The notes: generated by a model not told the origin, from the sequence alone. A DNA stretch of 64,000 nucleotides from Podarcis muralis (GCF_964188315.1 NC_135658.1:11098001-11162000), one strand, 5' to 3'. Shown: positions 1,881-11,930, counted from the first letter of the stretch. Translations and numbers: made by a program.

Positions 1881-2075
1881 GCCTCTTCAGTCCAGCCTAA
1901 TTTAGGTGGAAAATGTTGTTTGGTTGATGTGAGTCAATGACCCGCAACCCGCGTAGGGTAAATAAGACACAAGGATACATGTATTTTAGGTTAATGGGCT
2001 AAAGAAGGCCAATACTTTATTGGGTACATACAGCATGAGAGTGGTATTGGCTTAGGCATTGGATCAAACAACATA

Positions 2076-2520
2076 CTGTATTTTTTGCTCTATAGGACGC
2101 ACCAGACCATAGGAAGGGGAGAATAAGAAAAAAATAAATTCTTGTTCTCCCCCTCTAAAACAAGGTGCATTCACCCAAAGCCTCGGGAGTGCAGCAGTTC
2201 CCGCTGCACTCTGGAGGCTTCAGGTGGCTACCTTGGAAGCCTGGAGAGCAAGACTCTCCTGGCTTCAGCGAAAGGAACCCAAAGACTTTGGAGCGCAGCG
2301 CGAGGTCCCGCTGTTCTCCAAAGGCTTCAGGGATCTTTGAGGCTGCGGTGAGGGAAAGCAGCACTTCCCCCACACCGCAAGCCCCACAAGTTCGGGGGGC
2401 AGCAGCAAGGCTGCGTGCAGCCTTTGCGCTGCTCCCCGATCTGGTCTTTGAGGCTAGCGGTGGGGGAAAGCAGCGCTTCCCCCCACTGCCAGCCTCACAA
2501 GCTGCTGATGTGGGAACAGC
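2076..2520. mobile_element. Truncated Tc2/pogo-like MITE inside the YR element's A2 repeat
   Basis: TA|CTGTATTTTTTGCTCTATAGGACGCAC terminus and internal segments shared with the complete MITE at 11326-11904; second TIR missing. Confidence 0.7.
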
Positions 2521-2769
2521 TCCCACTCACAACACCTCCCCTCTGGGAGCGGAGGCTTTGTGAGTCAAGGACCTACAATGGGTAAATAAGACACAAGGAC
2601 ACATGTATTTTAGGTTAATGGGCTAAAGGAGGCCACAACTTTATTGGTTACAGCATGTGAGTGGTATTGGCTTAGGCATTGGATCAAACAACCTATATAT
2701 GACCCCACAGGACACATATTCCAATGCCTAACCACCACCTGAGCCAAAGAGGCTCGCCGCCAAATACCC

Positions 2770-3310
2770 TCACAGCTGCAACCAATCCCTAATGCTACTG
2801 ATATCAGCCAACCACACATTATTTCCTTGATCAGACAAATGAACGCCATCGTCTCTAAACAAGGCCACCTCGCTGAATCTGATGTCAACATGCTTGATCA
2901 CATGGCTGTTAATAAAACACAATTTGCGGGCCACCACACAATTCAAGAGTTTCCTGGATTTGTCGATGGCAACGACTGCCACGCCAAACTCTCCTCTTCA
3001 GAAGGGAGGACCAAAACAAGGTAGACTCCGGAAACAGAGCAGCAAGTTCGTCTAAGTCCTTTTTTATGTTCAATAACAAGTCCAAGCTCTTCCTGAAGGC
3101 CAAGTCGTTTCCCCCTTAGCTGAATGATCAGGTGGACCAAACACTGCTGCTTTTGCCTTTATAACTGGCATCAACTCCTCCCATCGCATGCCACGCCTTG
3201 AAATCCAGGAAACTCTCACACTTGCAGTCCCAGGTTGTTGCCCAAGCCGCAATCTCTGGCCCAGTGGACGATACTGTGACCGCAGATCCAAACTTGAATG
3301 TTAAAAGAAG
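2770..3310 (-). pseudogene. Frameshifted SGNH/GDSL-hydrolase-like ORF of the YR element
   Basis: All four SGNH blocks are readable across frames: VWICGHSIVHWA (Ser codon 3273-3275), ISRRGMRW, GGNDL (3101-3115), DGVHLS (DGVH at 2839-2850); preceded by a polypyrimidine tract and CAG acceptor at 3311-3313. Confidence 0.8.
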
Positions 3311-3361
3311 CTGAGGGTAAAAAAACAAGGACAGGTGAGTGGTTGCGTTCTAAAAATTCTT

Positions 3362-4924
3362 TCATATGTACCATTTCAATGCATTCCTGATTCTATTTGT
3401 TGGGTGGCCTAAAGGGCCAGCCATTGCGGCGGCCCCAATCCTGAAAGAGTCGGCAGCATATTCCTCTGCAGGGAAACCACAGGCATCAATCGCTTTGCGC
3501 AATACTTGCGTGAACTGATGCCTCTTCAAGCAGGAACCATCCTCGTGTATGAGTAAAGGGCCACGGCCAGGTGGTCTAAGATATAAGTACCGCCTAGTGT
3601 CTTTTACTGGGCATGGACCCTGGTTTTCAGAAGCAGAAAGTCTGATTGGGACACCTTTTCCCTGTTGGTCAGTTTTTGACCGCTGAATGCATATTATTAA
3701 CTCAGAGTCAGATAATTGTATGTCATTTAAGTGGAGGCCACAAGAGGAACCATCTGGCTGGGCCTCAAACACAACCTCGCCAACGCTCAGGGCTCCGAAG
3801 GCGGCAATGGAGAATGCCGCGGAAAACAAACGTGCTTCATATTTTGACCAACATATTGACCTAAGTTTCTGGCGTATCAGGCAGAAGAGATCAAATGTTA
3901 TCGGCTTTCCTTTTGCAGGTTGGAGTCTGCCCCAGCCCTTAATTGCCATATGAACGATAAAATCAGCACAAGGGTCAGCTGAGAATATAAATTGGCTAAA
4001 AAAGCTGATGGCAGCCGAATGCATTCTTATGGTTTCTGCTGCAAGTCCCAACATATGCAGGTGCGCTAGGTAATGTAACACGTGATCAGTAGTGGGCGGG
4101 ATATTGCGGGCAAGAGCTGAAACCTTGGATCTGAAATCCAGGAAATCGCACCAGGCTTTCTTATACAACCTGAGAGTAGAAGGTTCCAGTGAGGCTAATA
4201 CTCCCTTGATAACTTCACATTTCCAATGCTCCAGAGGTGGTCCGAGAAAGGTTCCGGCAGCTGCTGGGCCGAAGATGCTAAGTGGAAGCAGTTCATCTGA
4301 CTCCTCATCCGTATCCCGCGATCTAGACTTCTCGTAAACGTGTTTCTTCTTGGAGCGTCTCTTCCCTGCTGGCTTATCTGTTGTGGTGGGCTGTTGCTTG
4401 TCTGATGCCTGAAGCTGCAGCTCCTCACCATCAGAGATGCCAGACTCAGGAAGTTGAACCCCTGGTTGCAAGCTCTGAAGAAGACTAGAAGACTGAGACA
4501 TAGACATGTTATTGGGTGGAGCAGAAGCCGACCGACCTGAAGCACGTGCTGCTGCTGACAAGGTGTGGGCCATTCGGGACCTCGCACGAGTCTCTGGAGG
4601 TTGATTAGCTGACAACATAGCCTGCGTACTTGGACTTGCGAATTGGGATTCGTTAAATAATGATGCAGATGTGCCGGGCAGCTCACCATCGAGGGATGAG
4701 GGATCAGGCGCCGTGTCAGGAATAAAACTAGGAGAAGGGGAGGACCTTGGCGAACGGTTAGCAATACGTTGTTCAAAATCATCTATAAAACACCTGAAAG
4801 CATTAAATAATTGAGACATGGTTTTAGGATCAGAATCCTCCTTACGCGACTCCCGATTGCTTGAGGTAGGACGCTTTGCCTTAGAAGTGGGATTCTTGGC
4901 AGGAGCTTTCCTCTTTGGCGCCAT
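3362..4924 (-). CDS. 520-aa ORF: low-complexity gag-like N-terminus fused to a DIRS/Ngaro-type tyrosine recombinase (probably catalytically dead)
   Basis: SLEPSTLRLYKKAWCDF (SAM-like N-domain), AAFGALSVGE, RSKTDQQGKG, DSFRIGAA and terminal WYI are Ngaro/DIRS YR motifs; ATG at 4924-4922, TGA at 3364-3362. Confidence 0.8.
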   Translation of the reverse strand: MAPKRKAPAKNPTSKAKRPTSSNRESRKEDSDPKTMSQLFNAFRCFIDDFEQRIANRSPRSSPSPSFIPDTAPDPSSLDGELPGTSASLFNESQFASPSTQAMLSANQPPETRARSRMAHTLSAAARASGRSASAPPNNMSMSQSSSLLQSLQPGVQLPESGISDGEELQLQASDKQQPTTTDKPAGKRRSKKKHVYEKSRSRDTDEESDELLPLSIFGPAAAGTFLGPPLEHWKCEVIKGVLASLEPSTLRLYKKAWCDFLDFRSKVSALARNIPPTTDHVLHYLAHLHMLGLAAETIRMHSAAISFFSQFIFSADPCADFIVHMAIKGWGRLQPAKGKPITFDLFCLIRQKLRSICWSKYEARLFSAAFSIAAFGALSVGEVVFEAQPDGSSCGLHLNDIQLSDSELIICIQRSKTDQQGKGVPIRLSASENQGPCPVKDTRRYLYLRPPGRGPLLIHEDGSCLKRHQFTQVLRKAIDACGFPAEEYAADSFRIGAAAMAGPLGHPTNRIRNALKWYI

Positions 4925-7042
4925 CGGGAAACGGTTACACAGTGCTAAACAACACTATATACAGCAAAATGCAGTAGTGTGAATTATACTTCTTGTCTCT
5001 TTTTTATTGATTGATCGATTGGATTTTGTTATTAATTTCTATTTAATGAATTTTTATTATTATATATCTTTTATTTATTATCACTTAAGGCTAGCCCTAT
5101 AAGCCAGCTTTAAGGAAAAGGCAGCAAAACTATGCCAGCAACAAACTAGACAAATTAGCTGTGAAAGCAAAACCAAATTATTGAGGCAAAATAACCGCTT
5201 TGAAAAACCCTGTAAAACTGGCAAATGTCCTGCAGCACACAACAGCCAGCTATCCGCAAGCCTTAATTAACTTAGTCCCAATCCCAATTTAAATACGACT
5301 AATGCAATAATTCTAGAACCCCTAGTTAATTTAAACTCAAAACCAAGTGAAATAAATTCACAGCTGTTACTTAGCTCGGTGTTGTTTCAGGTAAACTTGC
5401 GGCTGTTAATAGAGCTCCAAGCCGCTAGAAAATAAAACTGTAGCCAAAAGACTTGTACGTAAACCTTAAAAGTAAAATGAACCAAGATCAATTGTAGCCA
5501 AATCAATTCAAAATAAAGTGATCGAAAGGGAAGCAAGACGTAAGCCCCCCCCCCCAAGTTCAAGGCTCCGGTCCTATGACCGGCAGTGAAGCGATTAGGA
5601 CTACTGGCAAGGCAACTGGAGGGCAATTAAGCAATTTTGGATAACAAAGGACAAAATGCAGGAGCAAGTCAAACAAAAGCAGCCCCGATGAGATGTAGGG
5701 CAAAGGGCGCTGGAGGGAAAAGCACACCCGTCCAGGCAATGCTCCTTGTTAATATGACCCCCAGATGGCTCCCCACAGCAACCCGCAGACGTAGAGGATG
5801 TTTGGAGGAAGAAGCCCCTTTGCTGAGGGAGAAATGCCCTAGCAAATAAGAAAAGGCACCAGTAAGGTTGAAAAAAGGTTTTTTTTTGGGGGGGGGGCTG
5901 AGGAAAAAAAACGGGGAGGGGGGGTTCGAAGCCCACCAGGCTGAATGGAGCCAGCCAATGAAAAACCCCAGAGGAACCTAGAGAGCCCGGAAAAGTAAAA
6001 AGGAAAACAGGCACGCTCTCTCCTCTGAAGGGCAGGGGGAAGCCCCGGCAGGGGAAATCCCAACAAATGACACGACGGCTGGGCTGGTGGGGGGGGTAGT
6101 TAGGGCTGTGAAGGGCTGGGGGAAGCCAAGTAAAGGAGACAACGGCTGGGCTGGGAGAAGCTGAAACAAGGCACTAAGGAGTTGCGAAGGGGAAGCCCCG
6201 GCAGGGGGAATCCCAACAAAGGACTCAAGGGCCGGGAAGAGCAGGATCAGCGCTCCGCCGACCCAAAGCAGCCTCCAAACCTCGAGGAGAAAGAGTCCCG
6301 CCGATCGCGGAGGAGCTGGCGAGGAAGAGGCAGAGATCTTGATCCCACGACTCCAGGAAGCAGAATGAATGAGGCGCAGGGTTGCCGCGTGGCCGCTTGA
6401 ATGAGGCTAGACTCCGCCCCCAAGCCAACCCTATTGGCTGCCTTGACCGGCGTGGCAGTCGGGAAAATCACGCAGGGGGCCGAATACGCTCCTGCTCTCA
6501 CTACCTCCCCTCTGGGAGGAGGAGAGGCTTTGCGTAACGTGGGAATCAGAAACTGCAGATTAACTGCAAATCAGTCCGTAGACCTCCAGATCGTTTCTCC
6601 TTTTGCCCTAGGAGCAGTTGTTGCAGGAAACGCCCCCCCAATCATTTAGTTTGTACAAACTTCACACACACTCACACACTACATACGGTACTGTTATAAA
6701 TTCATAGAAAATCAACCATACATCGGATTTGCACTGTTCCACTTTTATTTTACCCCATGAAGGAAGGACTACAGAATGGGGGAGGTTTCATACAGGGCAG
6801 CCATAATCCCTTGAGCATACCAGCACATCCACAGGAGCCCTGCCCAGTTGCTATGCCAACCCTGATGGTCCTAGACAGAAGACCAATCAAGGACAGAACA
6901 AACTGCATATGTGAGTGGATTCAACACGGACTGCAACAAAGGAACAGTGATTGGGTCTCCCCTCAGGGGGCAGGAAACTGCAACTTCCCTTTTGTCTTCT
7001 GGAAGTGACTCATGGGGAGGGGGAGAAGGGGAACCGGCCAGG

Positions 7043-7597: not shown

Positions 7598-7954
7598 AAA
7601 AGGTAAAGGTACCCCTGCCCGTACGGGCCAGTCTTGACAGACTCTGGGGTTGTGCGCCCATCTCACTCAAGAGGCCAGGGGCCAGCGCTGTCCGGAGACA
7701 CTTCCGGGTCACGTGGCCAGCGTGACATTGCTGCTCTGGCGAGCCAGAGCCGCACACGGAAACGCCGTTTACCTTCCCGCCAGTAAGCGGTCCCTATTTA
7801 TCTACTTGCACTAGTGTGCTTTCGAACTGTTAGGTTGGCAGGCGCTGGGACCGAGCATCGGAAGCGCACCCCGCCGCGGGGATTCGAACCGCCGACCTTT
7901 CGATCGGCAAGCCCTAGGCGCTGAGGCTTTTACCCACAGCGCCACCCGCGTCCC
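7598..7954 (-). mobile_element. Sauria SINE, full length, variant 3' end (GTACCCCTGCCCGTACGGG)
   Basis: 13-bp TSD TTATATTACAGTA at 7585-7597 and 7955-7967. Confidence 0.92.
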
Positions 7955-11107: not shown

Positions 11108-11930
11108 CAGTGGTACCTCGGGTTACATACGCTTCAGGTTACATGCGCTTCAGGTTACACACTCCGCTAACCCAGAAATAGTCCTTCAGGTTAAGAACTT
11201 TGCTTCAAGATAAGAACAGAAATCGTGCTTCAGTGGTGCGGCAGCAGTAGGAGGCCCCATTAGCTAAAGGGGTGCTTCAGGTTAAGAACAGTTTCAGGTA
11301 AAGAACGGACCTCCGGAATGAATTACCGTATTTTTCGCTCTATAGGACGCACTTTTCCCCCTTCAAAAATGAAGGGGAAATGTGTGTGCATCCTATGGAG
11401 CGAAGACGCCATAGCCCTGTGACCCTCTCCCGGCTGGAGAGGTGACGCGCGCCTATGGCAGGAGCCTTTATAGGCACGCGTCACCTCTCCAGCCGGGAGA
11501 GTGCGCGTGGGGCTAAAGAAGCCATGACGCGTGACTATGGCAGCAGCCTCTCTGCTGCGCCTTTCCGCTGCTCCCTGACCTGCTCTTTGGGGCTGGTGGT
11601 GGGCTTCCCCTCGCCAGCCCCAAAGAGCAGGTCGAAAGGAACCTGAAGCCTGGAGAGCGAGAGGGGTCGGTGCGCACCGACCCCTTTCGCTCTCCAGGCT
11701 TCCAAGGTAGCCGCCTGAACGCACCTTGTTTTAGAGCGGGAAAACAAGAGGGGGGAAATTCTCCCACTCTCTGCGCAGAGCCTCCTGCCGCTTCACTGAA
11801 GGGGCGCTGGGCAGAGAGCGGAATAATTTTTTCCCCTTGTTCTCCCCCCTCTAAAACAAGGTGCGTCCTGTTGTCCGGTGTGTCCTATGGTGCGAAAAAT
11901 ACGGTAAGTAGTTAACCCGAGGTACCACTG
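11108..11930. mobile_element. Tigger-like MITE interrupted by a Tc2-like MITE
   Basis: TA|CAGTGGTACCTCGGGTTA...TAACCCGAGGTACCACTG|TA inverted termini. Confidence 0.88.
11326..11904. mobile_element. Tc2/pogo-like MITE nested in the Tigger-like MITE
   Basis: TA|CCGTATTTTTCGC...GCGAAAAATACGG|TA; TA duplication at 11324-11325 and 11905-11906. Confidence 0.88.

Follow-up and report, generated by a model that had tools for sequence, protein, structure and literature searches.

Locus and layout of the element

The element analysed here lies on the minus strand of a 64-kb stretch of Podarcis muralis DNA (NC_135658.1:11098001-11162000; hereafter the window). An initial annotation had described it as a Ngaro-type tyrosine recombinase (YR) element with split direct repeats, holding a YR open reading frame (ORF) and an SGNH hydrolase remnant but no reverse transcriptase (RT) or full RNase H coding sequence between the repeats. 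The results below bear out each of these points. The element extends from ~6530 (5′ end) to ~1928 (3′ end) and has the layout A1-ORFs-B1-A2-B2, with the following features.

6150-6530, minus strand: terminal repeat A1; 5′ end of the element at ~6530, 3′ limit of A uncertain; its start matches the A2 stub, and paralogous contigs join A1-like sequence to B
4925-6149, minus strand: long non-coding leader that separates the start codon from A1
4297-4924, minus strand: Gag-derived 5′ part of the 520-residue ORF (residues 1-209 and the first base of codon 210), ending in TCAG
4296-4297, minus strand: putative exon-exon seam, between G and AT of Asp210
3362-4296, minus strand: tyrosine recombinase part of the ORF (residues 210-520), catalytically degenerate
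2773-3334, minus strand: SGNH/GDSL esterase remnant with three frameshifts
2559-2695, minus strand: repeat B1, with an AATAAA signal within
2502-2558, minus strand: A2 stub, directly after B1
2076-2501, no strand assigned: foreign insert in place of the remaining A2, a fragment of a very abundant repeat resembling a miniature inverted-repeat transposable element (MITE)
1928-2075, minus strand: repeat B2; 3′ end of the element at ~1928

A fusion of a Gag N-terminus and a recombinase

The minus-strand ORF at 3362-4924 (520 codons, 1563 nt) contains neither a stop nor a frameshift and is annotated as an NCBI protein. A word search returned 30 homologues, mostly lacertid proteins that are named "integrase/recombinase xerD homolog" or are uncharacterised. 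According to Pfam, P0003, P0016, P0017 and P0018 among them carry the RT domain RVT_1, and P0004 carries Lipase_GDSL_2. A Pfam scan of the ORF itself gave only weak sub-threshold matches and left residues 1-215 unexplained, and a word search with this segment returned no sequence other than the query. With a full HMMER search (phmmer), the N-terminal half matched the Gag-like proteins P0035 (Zootoca XP_034996112, 502 residues, CCCH zinc finger close to the C-terminus), P0036 (from P. lilfordi) and P0032. Residues 6-208 of the ORF are homologous to the N-terminus of P0035 and P0036, with which they share a basic N-terminus, an LF-x-AF helix, the motifs FIPDT and LPGTSA and a Lys-rich cluster. 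In tblastn searches, residues 6-200 of P0035 matched positions 4915-4301, where the homology stopped, and residues 182-507 of the RT-YR model P0003 matched positions 4300-3356. Since Gag homology ends at 4301 and YR homology starts at 4300, the ORF consists of a Gag N-terminus (Gag-N, residues 1-208) joined to a recombinase with a short leader (residues 209-520). The 208 N-terminal residues of the Gag-like ORF are thus present and fused to YR, and the Gag C-terminus with its CCCH finger is absent.

We searched the whole 64-kb window by tblastn and found no RT, RNase H or C-terminal part of Gag anywhere in it. The RT-bearing proteins P0003, P0016, P0017 and P0018 matched the window by their YR part only, and the Gag-like P0035 and P0036 by their N-terminus only, the C-terminal two thirds being without a match. 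As the RT and RNase H of a Ngaro element are missing, this copy is a non-autonomous derivative and not an autonomous member.

A recurrent seam at putative splice sites

The two parts of the ORF meet at TCAG/AT (4297/4296); CAG is the consensus end of an exon. In our alignment A6, the Gag sequences (P0035, P0036 and the Gag part of P0004) have [S/T]-Gly-Ser-Ser-Ser after an acidic stretch. Seven fused proteins have [S/T]-Asp-(Gly)-x-Leu-Pro at the position of this Gly: P0001, P0002 and P0009 from Zootoca, P0010 from P. raffonei, and P0006, P0008 and P0034 from P. muralis. These proteins thus come from three lacertid species, and they are only 42-57% identical to the 520-residue ORF. In P0004, the junction lies 17 residues downstream of this point and follows Ser-Tyr-Trp; here too, Gag has Gly and the fused protein has Asp. 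This replacement of Gly by Asp fits the signature expected of phase-1 donors G/GT joined to one acceptor AG/AY. Unspliced YR ORFs (P0003, P0005, P0007, P0015 and P0020) have Ser/Phe/Pro/Ile-rich peptides just before the seam Asp (SISFP, CPVSFS, VSIP, ISIS and FSK), with a final codon able to end in A, and such peptides fit what a pyrimidine tract followed by AG would encode.

A fusion of this kind could also have arisen by a one-off internal deletion at the DNA level, by which a full-length Ngaro copy lost its middle part during or after integration and gag-N and YR were joined in frame by chance. The initial annotation had regarded a junction unique to this copy, together with RT in all other copies, as a mark of such an event. 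To judge copy number, we used the summed depth of contigs at an identity of at least 80%, for which the single-copy baseline is ~35, and by this measure the junction region 4300-4499 is indeed single-copy. At the amino acid level, however, the seam recurs in the seven lacertid proteins despite their 42-57% identity. Moreover, the seam is in frame, with a Gag Gly codon on one side and the start of the conserved YR leader on the other, and the second junction, in P0004, again lies at a Gly and again gives Asp. We consider a chance deletion unlikely.

The coincidence of the seam with the putative splice sites and its presence in seven other annotated proteins, from three lacertid species, make reverse transcription of a spliced Gag-N/YR message the best explanation for the missing RT. 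The element is thus probably a retrocopy of a spliced sub-genomic Gag-N/YR RNA that was mobilised in trans, rather than the product of a random deletion.

Four points weigh against this conclusion. The donor GT and the acceptor AG are deduced from amino acid patterns only. The seven fused proteins are Gnomon models, which may be spliced predictions or may equally represent further intronless copies. The distant Ngaro relative L002 has no obvious acceptor before its YR. Finally, the proposal does not account for the 1.6 kb of leader that separate A1 from the start codon: the leader is rich in pyrimidines at 5500-6150 and in A and T at 5000-5500, the one leader ORF that was scanned (5601-6014) had no Pfam match, and tblastn gave no match of the leader to Gag or RT proteins.

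The esterase remnant

With P0004, a YR-SGNH protein, as the query, tblastn gave a match at 3305-2773 that runs across three different frames. The SGNH blocks CGHS, GGND and DGVH are visible, and the frame order 3, 2, 1, 2 corresponds to three frameshifts; the short SGNH pieces of the window had no match in Pfam. A pyrimidine tract followed by AG (3334-3311) is intact 5′ of the esterase and is in phase 1 with the esterase frame. This frame also has an ATG of its own at 3374, followed by a short hydrophobic stretch, and the L002 esterase (L002:1468-1560) has an ATG and a signal-peptide-like segment that is coded by a pyrimidine-rich tract ending in AG. Given this start of the L002 esterase, the tract before the esterase is ambiguous as evidence for an acceptor, as it could alternatively be coding sequence of a signal peptide.

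Classification and comparison with known elements

In distant relatives from metagenome contigs (24-32% identity), the gene order is RNase H-YR-SGNH (L002) and RNase H-YR (L001). No match to DUF3504 was found in the ORF at E values up to 1. Since DUF3504 is not matched and the YR is accompanied by RT, RNase H and SGNH in its relatives, it groups with those of Ngaro and not with Crypton, the placement that would have contradicted the initial annotation; it is a tyrosine recombinase of the Ngaro/DIRS kind.

The copy resembles vertebrate Ngaro elements (Goodwin & Poulter 2004; PMC9210276) in its split direct repeats, its Gag-like N-terminus, the SGNH hydrolase ORF downstream of YR (here a frameshifted remnant) and the lack of a visible target-site duplication. 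Its B repeat measures ~140-148 nt, compared with 152 nt in the Xenopus Ngaro elements DIRS-53_XT/54_XT (PMC9210276). Unlike these elements, it has no C-terminal Gag, RT or RNase H, its Gag-N is fused in frame to a YR with a degenerate active site, only a 55-nt stub and a foreign repeat stand in the place of A2, and the leader is 1.6 kb long. With Crypton transposons and Crypton-derived genes (DUF3504; PMC3212892) it has in common that YR is the sole recognisable enzyme left, and with domesticated Crypton genes (PMC3212892) that catalytic residues are lost while the frame is still open. It differs from Crypton in the missing DUF3504 match, in the RT-, RNase H- and SGNH-linked relatives of its YR and in its long split direct repeats. 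DIRS-1-type elements are YR retrotransposons too, but nothing was seen here of their inverted terminal repeats, their internal complementary region or their methyltransferase-like domain: the terminal repeats of the element are direct, and no methyltransferase match was obtained.

Terminal repeats and the foreign insert

B2 (1928-2075) and B1 (2559-2695) differ by 11 substitutions over 137 aligned positions (8%; 92% identical; Kimura two-parameter (K2P) distance 0.085) and by two indels. The start of A was found twice, at 6488-6530 and at 2502-2558, the latter beginning exactly at the end of B1. Only the first 45-55 nt are shared; they include an exact 16-mer, whose chance of occurring in 7 kb we estimate at ~0.01. 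The two A-repeat ends of the initial annotation are therefore real as far as the start of A is concerned, but what had been counted as A2 is only a 55-nt stub. In paralogous copies in DNA contigs, sequence like that at 6440, 6487 or 6489 is joined to 2502-like sequence and then to B; therefore, a full A, similar to the A1 of this copy, follows B in the family. The arrangement A1 ... B1-A2-B2 is that of the Ngaro split direct repeats, with A2 in this copy cut to ~55 nt.

We rejected 2076-2557 as a full A2, as ~55 nt of it match A1 and the remainder belongs to another repeat family. The part at 2076-2501 matches not A1 but a MITE-like repeat at 11324-11864, and its summed depth in DNA contigs of one P. 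muralis run is 23,000-94,000, compared with the single-copy baseline of ~35. The insert has internal units of ~110 nt and a terminus at 2074-2076, with loose contig ends at 2074 and 2109. This terminus, which adjoins B2, was also considered as an extension of B and rejected, since loose ends at 2074 have unrelated flanks in other copies; it is the end of an independent element. The MITE-like repeat elsewhere in the window (11324-11895) has terminal inverted repeats of ~25-30 nt, starting with TACCGTATTTTTCGCTCTATAGGACGCAC and ending with the inverted counterpart. The family to which it belongs has internal units of ~110 nt, is extremely abundant and is the source of the insert at 2076-2501.

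A1 has promoter-like features, namely a CCAAT box, a GC box and a TATA-like block at ~6390-6435. This promoter-like block is also present in a related Ngaro family, in a solo A-B unit at 56012-56500 (minus strand). In the solo unit, an A with CCAAT, GC and TATTTAA boxes directly abuts a B with AATAAA, which makes it a useful reference for an intact A-to-B junction. In the element, the internal junction formed by the end of B1 and the A2 stub is predicted to fold into a strong DNA hairpin (-19.5 kcal/mol), unlike the modelled junction of the B2 end with the A1 start, which gives a weak hairpin in this copy.

B-like sequence (1900-2099 and 2500-2699) has a summed depth of ~125,000, compared with 435 for A1, and the B core (~2580-2665) is thousands of times more abundant than the remaining element. 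This abundance may be due to solo units or to sequence shared with another repeat family. SINE-like (short interspersed nuclear element) copies in opposite orientation flank the element at 1001-1712 and 7735-7925 (arms 79-93% complementary); the depth maximum of the whole stretch is in the bin 1500-1699 (~1.9 million).

Decay, age and copy number

The initial annotation had seen the element as having kept its termini and its recombinase gene and lost RT. The termini are kept and RT is absent, but the recombinase has not been preserved in a functional state. Its first catalytic Arg is replaced by Ser (R380S, in GALSVGE), the His of HSFRIG by Asp (H492D), and a deletion of seven residues has shortened the spacing between the conserved Trp518 and the C-terminal Tyr. 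With this active site, the enzyme is catalytically dead. The divergence of 8.5% between B1 and B2 makes the insertion an old one, with an age of tens of millions of years if a rough rate of 1e-9 substitutions per site per year is assumed.

Positions 4300-5700 have baseline depth (35-42) in the P. muralis DNA contigs and are thus single-copy at the identity threshold used; therefore, there is no young family that shares the leader and the seam. The YR domain has a few paralogues in the DNA contigs, and their homology ends near 4281. Depth rises to ~12 times the baseline at 6300-6499, and copies of B number in the thousands. The stretch, or a part of it, is present in 20 of the 24 listed sequencing runs (8 studies), all 24 of which carry the same species label.

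Two versions of the segment 4340-4706 occur in the DNA contigs of the individual X1 and likewise in X17. One is identical to the window, and the other has 25 differences and 8 gap letters in X1 and 9 and 3, respectively, in X17. The Ser/Pro-rich part that codes for Gag-N thus seems to exist in two strongly divergent haplotypes.

Is the open frame a domesticated gene?

The ORF with its dead recombinase may have been exapted, that is, it may now be kept by the host as a non-catalytic (e.g. DNA-binding) protein expressed from the A1 promoter. Its 1563 nt are unbroken, as opposed to three frameshifts in the adjoining 560-nt esterase (conditional binomial p ~0.02). Both of its indels relative to the homologues (9 and 21 nt) are in frame, whereas the divergence of B1 and B2 (K2P 0.085, two indels in 137 nt) predicts ~66 substitutions and several indels in the ORF. 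The annotation of the ORF as an NCBI protein would also fit. Contigs of two small runs that we guessed to be RNA cover 2043-6127 evenly (depth ~10-26, compared with ~2 at 6300-6499), and this cover fades just downstream of the promoter-like block; the RNA status and the strand of these contigs are unproven. Raw single-cell RNA reads with the variants of this locus were of low depth and came from both strands.

However, the recombinase is changed at 8 of 59 otherwise invariant family columns, above the 2-10% of such positions changed in other lacertid sequences. The within-species variants (9 non-synonymous, 5 synonymous) do not fall clearly below the 3.3:1 expected under neutrality, and neither this count nor the invariant-column test gave a clear sign of constraint on the ORF. 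The protein collection contained no orthologue of at least 66% identity from P. raffonei, P. lilfordi, Lacerta or Zootoca, and this protein is the sole member of its cluster. As many Ngaro copies exist, one frame may stay open by luck. Exaptation thus appears very unlikely. If the copy were both transcribed from the A1 promoter and held open by host selection, it would be a young domesticated Ngaro-recombinase gene and at the same time physical proof that YR retrotransposons produce spliced sub-genomic RNAs, as retroviruses do, and that these RNAs can be retrotransposed; this combination seems quite unlikely.

Discussion

Spliced sub-genomic RNAs of retroviruses and long terminal repeat (LTR) retrotransposons can be reverse-transcribed and integrated as retrocopies. 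The copy described here resembles such retrocopies in that the missing segment is bounded by what appear to be the element's own splice sites, in that the termini are kept and in its presumed dependence on proteins provided in trans. It differs from them in being a YR retrotransposon, whose integration would depend on a recombinase and not on a DDE integrase.

We propose the following course of events. A full-length A1-gag-RT/RNaseH-YR-SGNH-B1-A2-B2 element would have been transcribed from the A1 promoter. Splicing would have joined a donor at the Gly codon in the acidic, Ser-rich middle of gag (exon end ...CAG/GT) to an acceptor just 5′ of the recombinase (...AG/AY), removing the C-terminal part of gag, RT and RNase H. 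The resulting sub-genomic RNA would have retained both terminal repeat blocks, A1 and B1-A2-B2, and autonomous copies would have provided in trans the proteins for its reverse transcription and integration. The recombinase may have decayed only later, losing its catalytic Arg and His and seven residues before the Tyr; elsewhere, later decay would have introduced the three esterase frameshifts and replaced most of A2 by an unrelated repeat. The presence of both termini and the arrangement of B followed by a full A in paralogous copies support this proposal, as does the finding that the RT of DIRS-1, also a YR retrotransposon, acts in trans (PMC7192593).

The opposite view, that RT-less copies propagate themselves as a non-autonomous Ngaro family or, on a route towards a YR-only mobile element (both suggested in the initial annotation), as a YR-only or YR-SGNH DNA transposon heading for a Crypton-like state, could draw on the several loci at which Gag-N/YR proteins are annotated across three lacertid species, on the kept termini and on a hairpin at the B-A junction suited to a recombinase site, but it is improbable, as 4300-5700 has no close sister copies at the identity threshold used and shows no sign of recent amplification, the recombinase of this copy is catalytically dead, the Gly/Asp pattern favours repeated splicing over a single inherited fusion, and the YR relatives adjoin RNase H and SGNH or are joined to RT in gene models.

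Our literature searches turned up no account of Ngaro or DIRS splicing and none of RT-less Ngaro families in lizards. To our knowledge, the expression of the downstream genes in Ngaro and DIRS elements is essentially unknown. With its frame open and its active site dead, the recombinase is a candidate for a domestication check. If the retrocopy origin is correct, the copy would provide DNA-level evidence that Ngaro elements splice a Gag leader onto their recombinase, as retroviruses do for env, and would show that the spliced RNAs hold all cis signals for reverse transcription and recombinase-mediated integration. Counting seam-bearing copies genome-wide would then measure how far spliced RNAs are excluded from replication. 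The copy would thus be a DNA fossil of retrovirus-like splicing in a little-studied class of elements.

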